DNA from: Basidiobolus meristosporus CBS 931.73 | Taxonomy: Eukaryota; Fungi; Basidiobolomycota | Direction of reading: 5' to 3' | DNA length: 64,000 nucleotides | Assembly: GCA_002104905.1 (NCBI GenBank) | Contig: MCFE01000380.1 | Coordinates: 20,219 to 84,218 of the forward strand | In this document: piece by piece, positions 55,171-64,000 of the stretch | Numbering within the stretch: position 1 is the stretch's first letter | How the letters are laid out: every line of letters starts with the position of its first letter | Translations under genes and position numbers: made by a program | Notes under the pieces: generated by a model | Databases searched by the model: none | What the model saw: the letters and a program-made list of their open reading frames with translations, nothing else | Told to the model about the DNA's origin: nothing

Positions 55171-55245
55171 CCCTGACCCTATCCCCCTAACCCCATCCCC
55201 CTAACCCCGTTCCTACATCAGGCGCATCTCGCCACCCTATCCCTA
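55171..55245. repeat. degenerate interstitial telomere-like tract, C-strand on +
   Basis: CCCTGA CCCTAT, ATCCCCCTAACCCC x2 (55181-55208), CCCTAT CCCTAG. Confidence 0.55.
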
Positions 55246-55549: not shown

Positions 55550-55661
55550 AATTACGCGTTAGTGAAGCAAATTTGGGAATAGATAACCGTAAAGGTTTGT
55601 TGGTAAAAAACATCCAGCATTTATAAATATGTAGCCTGTTTGCCTCCCTCAGTTGTCAGGG

Positions 55662-56441
55662 ATGTTGTCTTCAGTTAGGATCATCGTTACAGCTCTTGCT
55701 CTCTTCACGGTTGCGCATTCTGCACCAGTGGATAGCGGATCGGGGGATTTAACGCATAACCTGGTCTTCAAAAACAAATGCTCCCAAAATATTTGGTTGG
55801 CATCCTCGACCACTTGGGATAATACCCCACTTCCCGCCAACGGAGGCCTACTTATCCCTGGGGAAACCTTTACCATTACAGTGGTAGATCATTGGCAAGG
55901 CCGATTCTGGGGTCGAACGGAGTGCAATTTCCAGTATTTGAACTCAACTACCAATGCTGCCTGTGCTACAGGTGATTGTGGATCAGGCGAAGAGTACTGT
56001 GGGTATATTTCCGGCAGGCCCCCTGCCACATTGGCCGAGTTTGACTTCAACGGCTGGGATGACCTTGATTATTATGATATATCACTAGTGGATGGGTATA
56101 ACCTGCCTATTTCCATTCAGCCTCAAACGAAACTCCCTGCTCAGGGTGACCCTTACAGTTGTGGCAGCCCTACTGTGGAGAAAAACATCAATAGTATTTG
56201 TCCGAGCCCCCTTCAAATTCTGGACCACAACGGAGAGGTGGTTGGCTGTAAATCGGCTTGCAATGCTTTTGGATCCCCCCAGTACTGTTGCGCCGGTGCC
56301 TACAATTCTTCTCAAACTTGTCAACCGTCGAGCTATTCCAAGCTGTTTAAATCTGCCTGTCCCTCCTGCTACAGTTTTGCTTTCGACGATGCAACTTCCA
56401 CATTCACTTGTAAAGGAGACTACACCATTCAATTTTGTTAA
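55662..56441 (+). CDS. secreted thaumatin-like protein (PR-5/GH152, large type)
   Basis: Signal peptide, NKCSQNIW, WQGRFWGRTEC, CATGDCG, PATLAEF, YYDISLVDGYNLP, CKSAC, FKSACPSCYSFAFDD. Confidence 0.95.
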   Translation: MLSSVRIIVTALALFTVAHSAPVDSGSGDLTHNLVFKNKCSQNIWLASSTTWDNTPLPANGGLLIPGETFTITVVDHWQGRFWGRTECNFQYLNSTTNAACATGDCGSGEEYCGYISGRPPATLAEFDFNGWDDLDYYDISLVDGYNLPISIQPQTKLPAQGDPYSCGSPTVEKNINSICPSPLQILDHNGEVVGCKSACNAFGSPQYCCAGAYNSSQTCQPSSYSKLFKSACPSCYSFAFDDATSTFTCKGDYTIQFC

Positions 56442-57687: not shown

Positions 57688-57760
57688 GGGGCGTTGGCCT
57701 AATGGATAAGGCATCAGACTTCGGATCTGGGGATTGTGGGTTCGAGTCCCATGCGCCTCG
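57688..57760 (+). tRNA. trnR-UCG: tRNA-Arg (anticodon TCG)
   Basis: Cloverleaf: acceptor GGGGCGT/GCGCCTC, D arm GCCT-AATGGATA-AGGC, anticodon arm TCAGA-CT TCG GA-TCTGG, T arm GTGGG-TTCGAGT-CCCAT. T-rich run downstream. Confidence 0.95.
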
Positions 57761-58205
57761 CACTTATTTTGTAATCAGAATATTAACATTTTTTCCTCTC
57801 TATTCTTGGTGTATTGAGGCTGTTGATATATTTCTAACTATAGACAGGTCTACAGTAACATTATGTAATGTTCAGTGTGTATATATCAATTTTGTGGATG
57901 CCATTTTTGTAAATGATGTGAAAGCATTAATTCATTAGAAAAGAAAATCTAGTACCACTATAAGAAGACTATGTGTTACTCAACAGTAAGGTCAAAACTA
58001 CCCTTGCTCACATATATATGATTAACAACCCCTAGGAAGGGGCAAGCACAAGCACCAGCTCTGCTCTTGCTTTGCTTAAAAATGGGTATGGGATGTATCT
58101 CTCACAGTTTTTGTAAACAAAACTATCCTAACTCCTGATATAATAACTAGGTGTTCTTCAGCTTCCCTCTTTTCTGTTTCATTTGTGTATAATCATTCAC
58201 TGAAA

Positions 58206-58738
58206 CTTTGTAAAAATTTGTAATTCCACCTAAATATTTACCTAACTTGGTCACTTAGATCATTACCTACAAATCTTAGAGAATACTAACCAAATTCCTT
58301 GTTGTGACTTAGAATATTTTCACCAAAATATCAGATACCCAGAATATGTGAATTCTTAAAGTGGCCCAAACAGAACCAAGCTTTGCACACATGTCTTTGG
58401 GACCTTCCTAAGCCTATTCTACATGCTATTATACCAAGACTGTGTAAAAATATCCATACTACTTTTACATCCAATAAATCATTTGGTGAAAACCACAAAA
58501 TTTACTTGGTCTCCCAATCACTTCCAATATCTCCAAGACTCTTACAACAGGTTATGAGCCCCAAGCTGTCACTCTCTGCAATGTCTACTACTGCTATTAC
58601 TGGAATTTTTCCCACTGCTAAAAGTTGGATGGATCTAGCTACCAAGTGTGGAAGGTGAAGATGAAGATCCTGCCACAAGAAAGAGGCCTTTGGGATATTG
58701 TCATGGGAGAAGAATGCCCTCCTAAAAATGTGGCAGAG
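58206..58738 (+). mobile_element. Ty1/copia element copy 1: 5' LTR (about 58206-58549), PBS and start of gag, truncated
   Basis: LTR ends TTACAACA, followed by PBS GGTTATGAGCCC and MSTTAITG...KLDGSSYQVWKVKMK with frameshifts. Aligns to 59761-60300 and breaks off into GGGTTAGGG. Confidence 0.88.
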
Positions 58739-59684
58739 GGTTAGGGGGGGGGGGAGACAGTCACCAACAGGTTAAATATTTGTTTCAGTGGAAACAAAGA
58801 AGCCAGTGCTACTGTGGTAGCTTTGATACAAGAGTGTGTAGCTGAGGGGAATTAGTAGGTAAGTTAATAAGAAGTGATGAAAGTTCTTCAGTGCTCAAGA
58901 CACTGTTCAGGGGTAAGGGGGTAGCAAGAGGGGTAAGAATGATTTGTGAACAACATAAATGAGGGGAACATGATAAGGATTGATATTCATCATAAAGGGA
59001 GTGTGCTGCTTCAGATATTGCTGCCAAAGATCTGTCAAGTACTTCAGGTAGGCCAGCTTGGGTTTTTCTGACTGCTGAATATAATGAGCAAACTTCTTAA
59101 ATTCAGGATCTCCAAGTATTGTGCTCCAGCAGGAGCCAGGTGTAGTGTGGTGTGTTCTCTTCCAGGCCTTGATCATGTTGCAATACTCTGAGGAAGTGAT
59201 ATGGAGAACTAGAGAATTTACATGTTATTCACTTGTAGATATACTGGTCAAAAGTATGGTATTTATACTTTTGATTAAGTAGAGCAAGCAAATGTGTAGA
59301 GTTTGTTGAGGAAGGTCCCAAGAATATGTGTGCAAAGTTTGGGGGCTTTTGGACAACTCTGAGAAAGATCAAAATCTGGGTACCTGATAATTTGTTGTAA
59401 ATATTTCAAGTATATCCTAACAAGAAATTTGGTCAGGACAGAATGTTGATCAAAGAATAAGATCTATGTGACTAAGTCAGCATGAATATTTTGGTGACAA
59501 CTTAATGATTACAACAGATCAGTGGGTAGTTGCAGTGGTGAAGTTGGAGATATAAACTGGTTCTAAGGTAGAGAAGCCTTATCTTATAGGGCATAAACTC
59601 AAAAGCACCAAGAATAGCATGTCTGTAGGGGCATTCAGGCAGATGAGGCACCAAGGTGGTAATACACCAGACTGCAAGCTTGTC
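58738..59684 (-). mobile_element. telomere-joined retroelement copy A: 5'-truncated, ORF C-terminus plus 3' end, interrupted by a solo LTR
   Basis: Minus strand ends ...TTGGTGACTGTCTCCCCCCCCCCCTAACCC. The reading frame resumes across the solo LTR, and the protein is homologous to copy C. Confidence 0.75.
59176..59516 (-). mobile_element. copia solo LTR (341 bp) with perfect 5-bp TSD GATCA
   Basis: Minus strand TGTTGTAA...TTGCAACA. GATCA at 59171-59175 and 59517-59521. Internal similarity to the other LTRs (CCCAAACTTTGCACACAT.TTCTTGGGACCTTCC). Confidence 0.92.
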
Positions 59685-59760
59685 TTAGGGGAGGGAAAGT
59701 CACCAAGGTAGGTAAAATCTTTATTTGATTTCAGACAAGTCTAACTACAAATAAAGAAGC
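59685..59760 (-). mobile_element. telomere-joined retroelement copy B: 76-bp 3' tip
   Basis: TTAGGGGAGGGAAAGTCACCAAGGTAGGTAAAATCTTTATTTGATTTCAGACAAGTCTAACTACAAATAAAGAAGC is almost identical to 62258-62334. Confidence 0.85.
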
Positions 59761-61643
59761 TGTTGTAAAAATTTGTATTTCCACCTCAATATTCACCTAA
59801 CTTAGTCACTTAGATCATTACCTTCAAATCCTAGAGAATACTGACCAAATTCCTTGTCGGGATTTACTTAGAATATTTTCATCAAAATACCAGGTACCCA
59901 GAACATGAAAATTCTCAAAGTTGTCCAAACAGCCCCAAACTTTGCACACATGTTCTTGGGACCTTCCTTAGCCTATTTTACATGTTTGTAATACCAAGAC
60001 AAGGTAAAAGTATAAACACTACTTTTACATTCAATAAATCATTAAGTAAAAACCACATTATCTACTTGTTCTCCAAATCACTTCCAATATCTCCAAGACT
60101 CTTACAACAGGTTATGAGCCCCAAGCTGTCACTCTCTGCAATGTCTACTACTGCTATTACTGGAACTTCTCCCTCTGCTGAAAAGTTGGATGGATCTAAC
60201 TACCAAGTGTGGAAGGTGAAGATGAAGATACTGCTACAAGAAAGAGGCCTTTGGGATATTGTCATAGGAGAAGAATGCCCTCCTAAAAATATGGGAGAGG
60301 AAGCCTTAAAGTACCAGAAGAAAGAACAAAGTGCCTTCAACTGCATTTGCCTTAATGTCAAGGACAAATTGCTAATTCAATGCTCAAGAGCAAAAACAGC
60401 AAAGAATGCCTGGAAAGCATTAGAAGACACCTACCAGTCATGCTCAGCTGCCAAGAAACTGTATCTGAGACAAAAATTCTTTACTTCAAAGATGCTGTCA
60501 GGAGAAGAAATGAAAAATCTAATTAACAGAATACCCTGCTGGTAGATGAGATGGAATCTGTGGGCATACCAACTACTGATGAGGATGTGATAGCTACCAT
60601 CCTGAATAGCCTGACAGACGAGTTTCAGGGCCTTGTATCAGCCCTAGAGTCCAGAACTGAAGATTTGACCTTAAATTACATATATGGAAGGCTCCTGGAT
60701 GAAGAATTAAGAAAATCATGCACCAATAAGAGGGAAGAAGAAAATGCTTTAATAAGCAATGATAGCCAACAAAGGAGGTACTCAAGACCCTACAAAGGCA
60801 ACAGCAACCTATGTTGCAACTACTGCAAAAGGAAAGGACACACATCAGACCGGTGTCTCAAAAAGAGAGATTATCAGCAAAAGAAGCCTGAATATGGAAA
60901 TGCTGCAACAACTGAAGATAGACTATTCATATCTGCACTAAAAATGACCACAAACAAGGATTCTCAGATGTGGTATATTGCCTCTGGAGCTTCTCAACAC
61001 TTTACACGCCAAAAAGAACTTTTTACCCAATAGCAAGAAATTCCAATTAAGAAGGTTTTCAGGGGTGACAATAGAATACTTGATGCAGTGGGAGAAGGAA
61101 ATATCCAAGTAGACCTTAGAAGCAGTGAAGGAAGCCATACACTGACCTTTAAAGAAGTACTCTATGTACCAGAAATAGCCAAGAACCTACTCTCTGTAAG
61201 CAAGGCCACAGCAGAAGGACTCAGTTTCAGTTTTGACAATTCTGGATGCAGGATCACTGATCAAAATAGTGCTCATATTGCTTTGGGCATCAGAGATCAG
61301 AATCTATACAAGCTGACTTATATTCCATCATATCTGGAAGCCAATATAAGTAACTTAAATGAAGAAACACCAATGCTTTGGCACAGGAGATCTGGGCACA
61401 TCAATTTTGATTATTTGCGCAAAATGATCAAAGATCAGCTAATTTCTGGAGTGAAAATTGATCCCCCAGTCAATTTGGAGCACTGTGAAGCCTGCATATA
61501 TGGGAAACAAGCCAGACAACTATTTAAGAGCTCTGGGTTAATCAAAACTAAGAAAAAATTAGATCTAATTCACTCAGATCTTTGTGGACCTATGTGAAAT
61601 TTATCCTTAGGTGGGATAAAGTATTTTATCACCTTTATTGATG
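59761..61643 (+). mobile_element. Ty1/copia element copy 2: LTR 59761-60109, PBS, gag-protease-integrase pseudogene, truncated in the integrase
   Basis: TGTTGTAA...TTACAACA LTR, PBS GGTTATGAGCCC, gag from 60141, knuckle CNYCKRKGHTSDRC, protease WYIASGASQHF (D to A), WHRRSGH...CEAC, IHSDLCGPM*, YFITFID. Contains frameshifts and stops. Confidence 0.93.
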
Positions 61644-61842
61644 GTTCAGTGGGCCATTTGCTTGAAGTAAGCATGGCAAAGCACTTAGGGTAGATAATCA
61701 TCCTGAATTCAGTAGAGAGGTGTAAGTTATTGCAGACTTGGCTTTTATATGAGAGTATTGTTAGAGATTAGAATGTATTGTAGCTTATAGGAAGCCAATG
61801 GTGCTGTAGGGTGCCCAATGAATCTGGTACTATAAGCAGGCA
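61644..61842 (-). mobile_element. degenerate coding fragment, possibly a diverged piece of the telomere-joined family
   Basis: One minus frame has a single stop (LGTLQHHWLPISYNTF*SLTILSYKSQV...IIYP). Motif spacing weakly resembles copy A. Confidence 0.3.
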
Positions 61843-62210
61843 GGTAGGGGATGGAAAGTCACCAAGTTGGTGAAATCTTTATTTGAGTTAAGAACTAATC
61901 CAAGTACAAATAAAGAAGCCAATTAAGAGGTCTAGAACTTCTTTAATAAGTAATCTAATTTATGTTTTGTTTCATCTCTAATGTTTGTTTCAATAAAGTA
62001 AAGCTCATCAGGGGTAAATATAAAATTCAGGGGTTTTGGGGGAAGTACAAATTTTAGATGTTTCTGATCAATATAATCCAAGACTGGAACCCAGCCTGGG
62101 ATTAGGTGTAGTAGGAAAGGTGTGCGGACTTGTAAGTAGCCCTGCCACATAGATCTTAGATGGTCCTGAGCCAGTAGTCTTGGTTTCTCAGCTTTTTTAA
62201 GTGTTGAAGC
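61843..62210 (-). mobile_element. telomere-joined retroelement copy C: ORF C-terminus plus 3' end
   Basis: Open frame ...KAEKPRLLAQDHLRSMWQGYLQVRTPF...LPPKPLNFIFTPDEL...KKF*. The 3' UTR shares the AATAAA and GGTGACTTTCC.TCCCCTA motif. Confidence 0.8.
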
Positions 62211-62255
62211 TGTTGTAAGAGTCTTGGAGATATTGGAAGTGATTTGGAGAACAAG
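62211..62255 (-). mobile_element. 45-bp 3' tip of a copia LTR, inverted and truncated
   Basis: Reverse complement CTTGTTCTCCAAATCACTTCCAATATCTCCAAGACTCTTACAACA matches 60065-60109, then fuses to GGGTTAGGG. Confidence 0.9.
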
Positions 62256-63717
62256 GGTTAGGGGGAGGGAAAGTCACCAAGGTAGGTGAAATCTTTATTT
62301 GATTTCAGACAAGTCTAACTACAAATAAAGAAGCCAGCTGGGAATAGAAGATTCCCAAAGTAAATACTAAGTTGAATATGAATAAATCTAAGCTAAAGTT
62401 AAGGCAGTATCCCAGAGTACACTGGAGTTCAGGTTCATGGGGGGAGTGAAGTAGATAAGCTTGAGAGATATAATAATCTTTGAGGAAGTGGGTAACAGCA
62501 GGTGAAGGGGAGTTTTTGATAAGTGAAGTGAATCTTGAGAGCAGAGACTCCTCTAAGGAGAAGGTCTTGTAAACTGGAGAATCAGGAAACTCTTTAAAGG
62601 CATGGTCAGTAGGTTCCCAGTAAAGCTGGTCAGAGACATTTTGAGAGAACTCTTTAGCAATACTTTTGTCAAGTACTACCTCCAGAGTGTGATGGTTGAT
62701 AAATCTCATGTTGACAATCTTGGATAAGTTGTAACCTTGTTGCTTGAGATACATCCTATGCTCAGATATAGGAATAAACTCCACATTGGCAAAGTAGCAG
62801 ACAGCCCAGTCAGTAGCAGGAGGCAAATCAGAAGTGGCAGGAAACTTTCTTTTGGTCTTGGGAGGAGCAGCAGGATGTCTTGAGGGAGCAGGAACAGACT
62901 TTTTGACAACTTCAGAGTAGGAAGAGTGAGCAGGAGCAGATGATTCTTGGGGAGTCTTGTTGGCAGGAAGGGTTGGCACAGGGACAATAGATTCTTGCAG
63001 ATCAGAGAAGGCAGAAAAGAGCTTTTGAACTTGTTTCTTGAGTAGAGCATTTTCAGCTTCAACAAGTGCAAGCCTTTCCTCAAGGAAAGAAATCTGAAGG
63101 GAATGGAGTGAAGGCATAAGAAATAAGAAGAAGAGTGTAAGATGGGGTGGGTGGGAGGGAAAATTAGCAGGGAGAAGAGAAGGAAGGAGCAAAAATTCCA
63201 GAAGTCAGAATTTATAGATGGATGGACAAGGGTAGATGGATGGATTATTCCTGGGTTAGGAAAATTAGCAGGGAGAAGAGAAGGGTTAGGGTGTAGGTGT
63301 TATAGTAAGGGCTAGGAAAAGGTTAGAAGAGCAGGGGGTCTGGGGGACACAGTCCCCTAGAGAATAAAAAAGCAGGGGGTTTGGGGGATGCAATCCCCCA
63401 TACTGCTCTTATACACTTTAAATTCCCGTTGGATTACTTTTCTCTCATTCTTGGTTCTGGTCCCTTAGGGTTAGAATTCCTCCTCCTAACCCTTATCACC
63501 CTAACCATAAATATTTTTGCCCTACAATTGGCACATTGTCTGCTCATATGGTGGGCATGTCTGGGCCAATATTTGTCTCCCTATACTGTCCATACGCTCT
63601 GTATAAGTCTTGATGACTATTTAATTAATAAATTGTTATTTTTAATATATATCTAATAATTAATGGGATTCATCCCAATCTGACCACAATCCCATATTTT
63701 GATAAGCTTTGGGCACC
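62255..63717 (-). mobile_element. telomere-joined retroelement copy D (about 1.46 kb): ORF1-only, capped distally by telomeric repeats
   Basis: 5' end abuts TAGGG(TTAGGG)6. About 600-nt 5' region, one ORF, then AATAAA and a 3' end ...CCCTCCCCCTAACCC. No RT or endonuclease motifs. Confidence 0.78.
62305..63117 (-). CDS. retroelement ORF1/gag-like protein (270 aa from the first ATG)
   Basis: Coiled coil LEERLALVEAENALLKKQV, SYSEVVKK motif, Pro-rich linker, and an alpha/beta RRM-like segment WAVCYFANVEF...IVNMRFINHHTLEVVL. The domain call is by pattern only. Confidence 0.65.
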   Translation of the reverse strand: MPSLHSLQISFLEERLALVEAENALLKKQVQKLFSAFSDLQESIVPVPTLPANKTPQESSAPAHSSYSEVVKKSVPAPSRHPAAPPKTKRKFPATSDLPPATDWAVCYFANVEFIPISEHRMYLKQQGYNLSKIVNMRFINHHTLEVVLDKSIAKEFSQNVSDQLYWEPTDHAFKEFPDSPVYKTFSLEESLLSRFTSLIKNSPSPAVTHFLKDYYISQAYLLHSPHEPELQCTLGYCLNFSLDLFIFNLVFTLGIFYSQLASLFVVRLV

Positions 63718-63760
63718 TAGGGTTAGGGTTAGGGTTAGGGTTAGGGTTAGGGTTAGGGTT
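63718..63760 (+). repeat. internal telomeric tract TAGGG(TTAGGG)6TT
   Basis: Perfect repeats read directly. Confidence 0.97.
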
Positions 63761-63845
63761 GAGGCGAAGGAGGATAATCGGGACCTTCTAGCGACTAATA
63801 TTTCAAACCGCAAAGTGACTTAGGACGACGAATCGTTTTTCTAAA
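63761..63845. other. 85-nt non-telomeric insert within the telomere
   Basis: Unique sequence between two TTAGGG tracts. I found no match elsewhere in the window. Confidence 0.9.
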
Positions 63846-63881
<36 letters not shown>

Positions 63882-64000
63882 GGTTAGGGTTAGGGTTAGG
63901 GTTAGGGTTAGGGTTAGGGTTAGGGTTAGGGTTAGGGTTAGGGTTAGGGTTAGGGTTAGGGTTAGGGTTAGGGTTAGGGTTAGGGTTAGGGTTAGGGTTA
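63846..64000 (+). repeat. terminal telomere (TTAGGG)n with one TTTAGGG variant near 63859-63865
   Basis: Continuous G-strand repeats to the window end, oriented as a right chromosome end. Confidence 0.98.

Follow-up and report, generated by a model that had tools for sequence, protein, structure and literature searches.

A candidate telomere-primed cDNA tag inside a terminal telomere of Basidiobolus meristosporus

Introduction

How does a short piece of non-telomeric DNA come to lie inside a telomere, with telomere repeats of the same orientation on both sides? This question is raised by one chromosome end of the fungus Basidiobolus meristosporus CBS 931.73, which we analyzed as a 64,000-nt stretch (hereafter the window) of contig MCFE01000380.1 in assembly GCA_002104905.1. 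The window end (64000) is the end of the contig, the tail of the fetched locus being identical to that of the window. The original prediction for this end was that an 85-nt insert within the telomere represents a cDNA of the 5' region of the telomerase RNA (TER). In the literature searched, no description of a TER of Basidiobolus or of other early-diverging fungi was found, and if the prediction is true, the insert could serve directly as a probe for what would be the first TER from an early-diverging fungus, besides providing evidence of substrates common to telomeric retroelements and telomerase.

Results

Anatomy of the telomere tip

The telomere tip consists of the following parts.

63718-63760, plus strand: inner (older) telomere tract, TAGGG(TTAGGG)6TT, perfect
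63761-63845, probably minus strand as to RNA sense: 85-nt unique insert, CpG-rich and non-coding
63846-64000, plus strand: outer (newer) telomere cap, composed of G, 2 TTAGGG, TTTAGGG at 63859, 22 TTAGGG and TTA

Both tracts around the insert are G-strand sequences in the same orientation, and the outer cap reaches the contig end, from which the insert is 155 nt away. As predicted, the insert is preceded by (TTAGGG)6TT, which belongs to a slightly longer inner tract, and consists of 85 nt that are unique in the window; indeed, it remained single-copy there even when 3 mismatches were allowed or 7-nt blast words were used. The new telomere had also been described as opening with a TTTAGGG variant. 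The variant exists, but it is the third repeat of the cap rather than the first. It is the single deviation from the repeat in 198 nt of flanking telomere (63718-63760 and 63846-64000), which argues for a well-supported consensus. The inner junction is in register (...GGGTT/GAGG, the stroke marking the junction), and the 3' end of the insert, written as C-strand RNA, reads ...GAAAUAUUAGUCGCUAGAAGG(13)CCUUCGCCUC/AACCC. The insert is joined to 7 telomere repeats, in contrast to the 9-nt seed that joins the elements of the stack described below. The lone G at 63846 possibly marks the final base to be copied or added, from which telomerase resumed. The possibility of a coding gene as the source, which the original prediction had proposed to check, finds no support, with stop codons in all six reading frames. 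Although polarity is not readable from a non-coding 85-mer, we infer that the RNA sense of the insert is the minus strand because all neighbouring elements are so oriented.

The retroelement stack beneath the telomere

The interior of the window carries ordinary fungal genes including those for a kinesin, a histidine kinase, a thaumatin (ORF 55653-56441) and a glyoxal oxidase. Its last 5.7 kb form a one-way stack of elements, as listed here from the inside outwards.

58208-58737: truncated copia element
up to about 59686: GGGTTAGGG plus G-run junction, followed by a 5'-truncated element
59688-59760: solo ORF1-type (gag-only-type) 3' tail of 73 nt, between the truncated element and a copia LTR
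distal to the solo tail: second copia element
from 61847: tail variant
62255-63282, minus strand: ORF1-only (gag-like) telomere-attached element, ORF 62305-63192
63283-63717, minus strand: separate non-coding element, GGGTTAGGG seed at 63283-63291 and 426-nt body at 63292-63717

In all stack members the C-strand is the sense strand, and the terminal CCCTAACCC is joined to a GGGTTAGGG seed. Their tails share a 3' module in which AAUAAA and a TCACC/GGTGA-type stem come before a C-run and CTAACCC, and the tail of the ORF1-only element reads AAATAAAG..TCACC(6)GGTGA..CTTTCCCTCCCCCTAACCC on the minus strand. This element (62255-63282) matched no Pfam family. In the gag-only element, tandem repeats of ~101-104 nt, variable in number, make up the 5' UTR (63158-63284; also L002:1-210 in B. 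ranarum), and the copy in the window begins inside one such repeat, right after the GGGTTAGGG seed. The 426-nt non-coding element has a tail of its own (...CCTACACCCTAACCC) and lies directly under the inner telomere tract; searches for tRNAs (ARAGORN) and Rfam families both returned no match for it. The adjacent 1.46 kb had been regarded as one element. Because of the GGGTTAGGG seed at 63283 and the variable number of 5' UTR repeats, it is probably two elements, split at 63283. Further inside, the 73-nt solo tail is an extreme 5' truncation within the stack.

B. ranarum has the same 3' module, as do Logan contigs on which LINEs with ORF1 and a reverse transcriptase (RT)-bearing ORF2 are found; the B. 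ranarum homologues of the ORF1 element share its tail, and their 5' UTR is likewise repeated. The same element families also occur in Logan/ENA Basidiobolus-type contigs and end two other B. meristosporus subtelomeres.

MCFE01000356.1:6415-8815 (L011:1-2400): subtelomere with an adjoining thaumatin paralogue
MCFE01000215.1:1728-6695 (L012:15546-20513): subtelomere with an adjoining thaumatin paralogue

This arrangement suggests that blocks of subtelomeric genes were duplicated and that one retroelement system caps them all. Since the same families are present at other subtelomeres, in B. ranarum and in the Logan/ENA contigs, telomere-primed RT activity appears to be a standing property of the Basidiobolus lineage. 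The JGI annotation of B. meristosporus contains zero genes in the stacks.

CpG composition of the insert

The insert contains 7 CpGs (at 63765, 63779, 63792, 63809, 63826, 63829 and 63834) with a CpG o/e of 1.77, and at least 7 CpGs are reached by 5% of all 85-nt segments of the whole window. The adjacent 1.46 kb (62255-63717) contains 2, as does its non-coding part (63283-63717), so the counts originally given are correct. CpG o/e is 0.00-0.06 across 58001-63000 and 0.5-1.2 in the window interior; near-absence of CpG, a family trait of the stack elements, is thus not shared by the insert. The fall in CpG o/e is abrupt and occurs near 58,000, exactly at the start of the retroelement stack, and the copia, gag-only and non-coding elements of 58000-63717 are all almost CpG-free. 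A piggyBac-type transposase region at 1-4 kb retains a CpG o/e of ~0.6.

The CpG contrast had been taken as a sign of a different origin. This holds against the neighbouring families as far as their CpG-free bodies and tails are concerned, which the CpG content excludes as the source of the insert, but an element head would still fit. In a related contig, a LINE 5' head (L004:4436-4580) has 6 CpGs in its first ~145 nt, while the remaining UTR and most of the ORFs of this LINE are without CpG; the head may be a protected internal promoter. The contrast between the insert and its neighbours is therefore weaker than apparent, although the CpG density of the insert (7 in 85 nt) is higher than that of this head, the only CpG-bearing one seen.

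Search for the source of the insert

The insert was absent from the window outside the tip and had no match in 121 kb of other Basidiobolus DNA, which comprised B. ranarum, Logan and ENA contigs together with ~45 kb of B. meristosporus DNA and took in parts of the two further subtelomeric stacks, whose telomeres themselves lie outside the sampled sequence. These contigs were reached via ORF1 homologues, a LINE ORF2 and thaumatin paralogues. The original prediction had also called for a comparison with the 3' ends of multicopy retroelements, and none of the sampled Basidiobolus tails matched: the insert was not found among the 3' tails in the window, in the two other subtelomeres or in the B. 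ranarum, Logan and ENA contigs, whether with at most 3 mismatches or by blastn-short, a comparison covering a small part of the elements of the genome. Correspondingly, the shared 3' module is absent from the insert, which has neither AAUAAA nor a C-run and has a different stem. No significant similarity was detected to the LINE heads of related contigs L003-L007, which are heads of relatives rather than a B. meristosporus LINE 5' end, or to ORF1-element heads; the best head alignment reached p~0.01, uncorrected for 14 tests, and was on the wrong strand.

A gathering scan of the window with Rfam identified only a tRNA at 57688, and E-value scans (E up to 10) of 63740-63865 and 62250-63870 gave only chance-level matches, with no rRNA match for the insert. 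TER covariance models also failed to match the insert on either strand at E up to 10, a result that is uninformative because TERs diverge fast. ARAGORN predicted no tRNA in the insert, either alone or extended by 0-43 nt of telomere plus the following 150 nt. By blastn, the insert matched no plasmids, no phages including lambda, and no E. coli sequence, and none of its exact 20-23-mers occurred in JGI metagenomes (two scans) or in GTDB prokaryote genomes.

Two derivations from a telomeric SINE were considered and, as far as tRNA-likeness bears on them, rejected. In one, the insert would be the internally primed head of the SINE, which is tRNA-Gly-like with an internal CCCTAACCCT; priming at that motif would leave a head by itself between telomere tracts, but neither ARAGORN nor Rfam detected tRNA-likeness in the insert. 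In the other, the 85 nt, a collapsed telomere motif and the 426-nt body would together constitute a ~519-nt tRNA-headed SINE; the arithmetic is close (85 + about 10 + 426), but no collapsed construct was tRNA-like.

Proposed RNA structure of the insert

The original prediction described a UUCG hairpin and a bulged stem close to a template-like sequence. Indeed, the ACGA(UUCG)UCGU hairpin and the GAAGG/CCUUC stem are present in the C-strand RNA, and the GC..GAAGG(13)CCUUC-GC helix (5+2 bp) sits 3 nt from the junction. Both features, however, are at chance level. A contiguous stem of at least 5 bp ending at most 8 nt from the 3' end was present in 1586 of 3000 dinucleotide shuffles (53%), and at least one 4-bp tetraloop hairpin in 2297 of 3000 (77%). 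The C-strand RNA of the insert plus part of the repeat has an MFE of -9.4 kcal/mol versus -13.75 +/- 2.69 for shuffles (z +1.62), 194 of the 200 shuffles folding at least as well, and the plus-strand fold of the insert has a z of +0.6. Aspergillus TERs are known to have such a helix, placed two or three nt 5' of their template (PMC3603654). The template-boundary-like helix of the insert is indistinguishable from chance. The observation is real in sequence and composition, not in structure.

Discussion

The explanation that we favour, and that seems to us somewhat better than an even proposition, is that the insert is a real, recent and short cDNA made on the G-overhang by telomere-primed reverse transcription and re-capped by telomerase. 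It is favoured because the two telomere tracts have the same orientation and the insert lies distal to a one-way stack in C-strand sense, and so short a cDNA is plausible in view of the 73-nt solo tail (59688-59760), a copy of comparable brevity in this stack. In the proposed mechanism, an RNA with a C-strand-like stretch (...CCUUCGCCUC-AACCCUAACCC...) would pair with an ordinary telomere at its TTAGGG 3' overhang, and an RT would extend the overhang along this RNA for 85-86 nt; the most likely enzyme is that of the telomere-primed LINE system to which the underlying stack is due. Synthesis would then stop at the 5' end of the RNA or by abortion, or the copy would later be eroded, after which telomerase would resume from the terminal ...CTAAAG and synthesize the present cap. 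This fits the single G ahead of TTAGGG, which would have been aligned as the final G of a repeat.

The putative RNA intermediate would be non-coding, CpG-normal and none of the element tails in the window. Its source is most likely an unsampled telomere-targeted family, from which the insert would derive either as a tip left by severe truncation or as a 5' head primed internally; a CpG-rich element fragment of this kind is possible because related LINE heads carry CpGs while their bodies are CpG-free. The next most likely source is another cellular RNA captured in trans. By template switching, LINE RTs copy cellular RNAs in trans and leave short orphan cDNAs, such as U6/L1 chimeras. Such retro-copies are recognisable small RNAs, whereas the insert matches no Rfam family on either strand. 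Several findings weaken the cDNA explanation: no source was found and the insert is without the module of the neighbouring tails, it has no significant similarity to the LINE and ORF1-element heads compared, and it is denser in CpG than the one CpG-bearing LINE head. The explanation is further weakened because the insert is known from the assembly sequence alone and its non-coding sequence does not disclose its polarity.

Close parallels are found among telomeric retroelement systems. In Magnaporthe, truncated telomeric retrotransposons are capped by canonical repeats, through abortive copying or through erosion followed by healing (PMC7367193). Like the insert, the truncated copies and relics of MoTeR in Magnaporthe oryzae are short non-telomeric pieces within or beneath TTAGGG arrays, with telomere repeats on both sides (PMC7367193), and the origin proposed here for the insert is the same as theirs, namely telomere-targeted reverse transcription, truncation and re-capping by telomerase. 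Unlike the insert, for which no parent element was found and which is without the 3' module of the telomeric families of its own genome, MoTeR relics can be recognised as the 3' termini of full-length elements that are known. The LINE/gag-only/SINE system of Basidiobolus (58738-63717) shares with the insert the chromosome end, the probable polarity, the C-strand-like stretch at the junction and a distal telomerase cap. The insert differs from this system in having no similarity to the tails and heads compared, in being CpG-rich rather than CpG-free, and in following 7 repeats instead of a 9-nt seed.

Could the insert instead preserve part of TER, as originally predicted? In that case, the 85 nt would be a cDNA of the TER region immediately 5' of the template, extending to or close to the 5' end of TER and made by telomerase copying past its template boundary or by the LINE RT acting on an overhang paired with TER. 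We regard this as unlikely, although TER alone among cellular RNAs is expected to pair with the G-overhang via an internal CCCUAA-type stretch and the junction is in register. The insert is also CpG-normal like genes and unlike the neighbouring retroelements, yet CpG richness would equally fit element heads. That it is non-coding and belongs to no known RNA family is expected of a fast-evolving TER. Its 5+2-bp helix at 3 nt from the junction resembles the helix located 2-3 nt 5' of the template in fungal TERs (PMC3603654), but, as shown above, this helix and the tetraloop hairpin are no more than shuffled sequences produce. Template-boundary helices are known from yeast, ciliate, vertebrate and Aspergillus TERs (PMC3603654), and read-through at the boundary would give non-telomeric G-strand sequence immediately behind a telomeric repeat and in the same polarity, with a helix near the junction as in the insert, where it does not rise above chance. 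The polarity named in the original prediction fits any RNA copied onto a G-overhang rather than TER in particular.

Other considerations also speak against TER. Described fungal TERs are long RNAs, and the template-boundary failures that are known add a few nt rather than 85; we know of no description of a natural 85-nt TER copy in a telomere. The pseudoknot/triple helix and the three-way junction (CR4/5) of TERs lie 3' of the template and hence outside the insert. Moreover, the prior odds of TER are low in comparison with a genome full of RNAs ending in CCCUAACCC. Nothing contradicts TER and nothing singles it out, and the alternative already named in the original prediction, that a second telomere-targeted element left its tip here or that some other RNA was captured, is at least as likely as TER.

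A capture event at the DNA level appears a little more doubtful. Here, a telomere would have broken and acquired 85 bp from genomic, mitochondrial or rDNA-spacer DNA by end-joining or break-induced copying, and telomere repeats would then have been restored by recombination or telomerase. In favour of it, the CpG-normal composition fits unique genomic DNA, and interstitial telomere tracts of at least 3 repeats are break-prone in Magnaporthe, where repairs by NHEJ or BIR are documented (PMC7367193). Against it, two joins would be needed that both preserve telomere orientation, and the piece has no match in the window or in the 121 kb of other Basidiobolus DNA and no Rfam rRNA match. In addition, the ...CCUC/AACCCUAA junction resembles overhang annealing more than a blunt join.

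An assembly or read artefact, such as a chimeric or mis-corrected long read at a thinly covered contig end, is about equally improbable. The distance of 155 nt places the insert where coverage is usually lowest, and TTTAGGG at 63859 could be a residual insertion error, but the flanking tracts are nearly perfect and agree in strand, whereas a hairpin adapter left in a read would cause a strand switch. Nothing else in the last 64 kb of the contig could have been copied into the 85 nt, and a real insert is favoured because lambda, plasmids and vectors, E. coli and prokaryotes all gave no match.

If the insert is the truncated or orphan cDNA that we favour, it would be a footprint of the known telomere-primed retroelements working beside telomerase in Basidiobolus, and this system would also lay down very short sequences from outside its families that are re-capped by telomerase. 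Should the same or a nested sequence recur with the same inner junction, a specific overhang-pairing RNA would be defined, and a single internal locus for such an RNA, with a template of 1.5 repeats, would identify the TER of an early-diverging fungal lineage. The TER explanation predicts one internal transcribed locus at which these 85 nt are followed by ~1.5 CCCTAA repeats, and a discrete RNA that begins (C)UUUAGAAAAACG and continues into the CCCUAA template and beyond.

Telomere-like motifs were also observed outside the telomere tip. An array of CCCTAACCCCATCC x2.7 in C-strand orientation is located at 55171-55208, just after the histidine-kinase ORF and 3 kb inside the stack boundary. Divergent Basidiobolus-type LINEs carry CCCTAACCC at the same place in ORF2, where it is read as codons F-P-N-P (L004:2491, L004:7601, L005:2471, L006:3011 and L007:2586); one of these copies is CpG-normal and distant. 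This CCCTAACCC represents an internal telomere-template-like motif conserved in the coding sequence of LINE ORF2.
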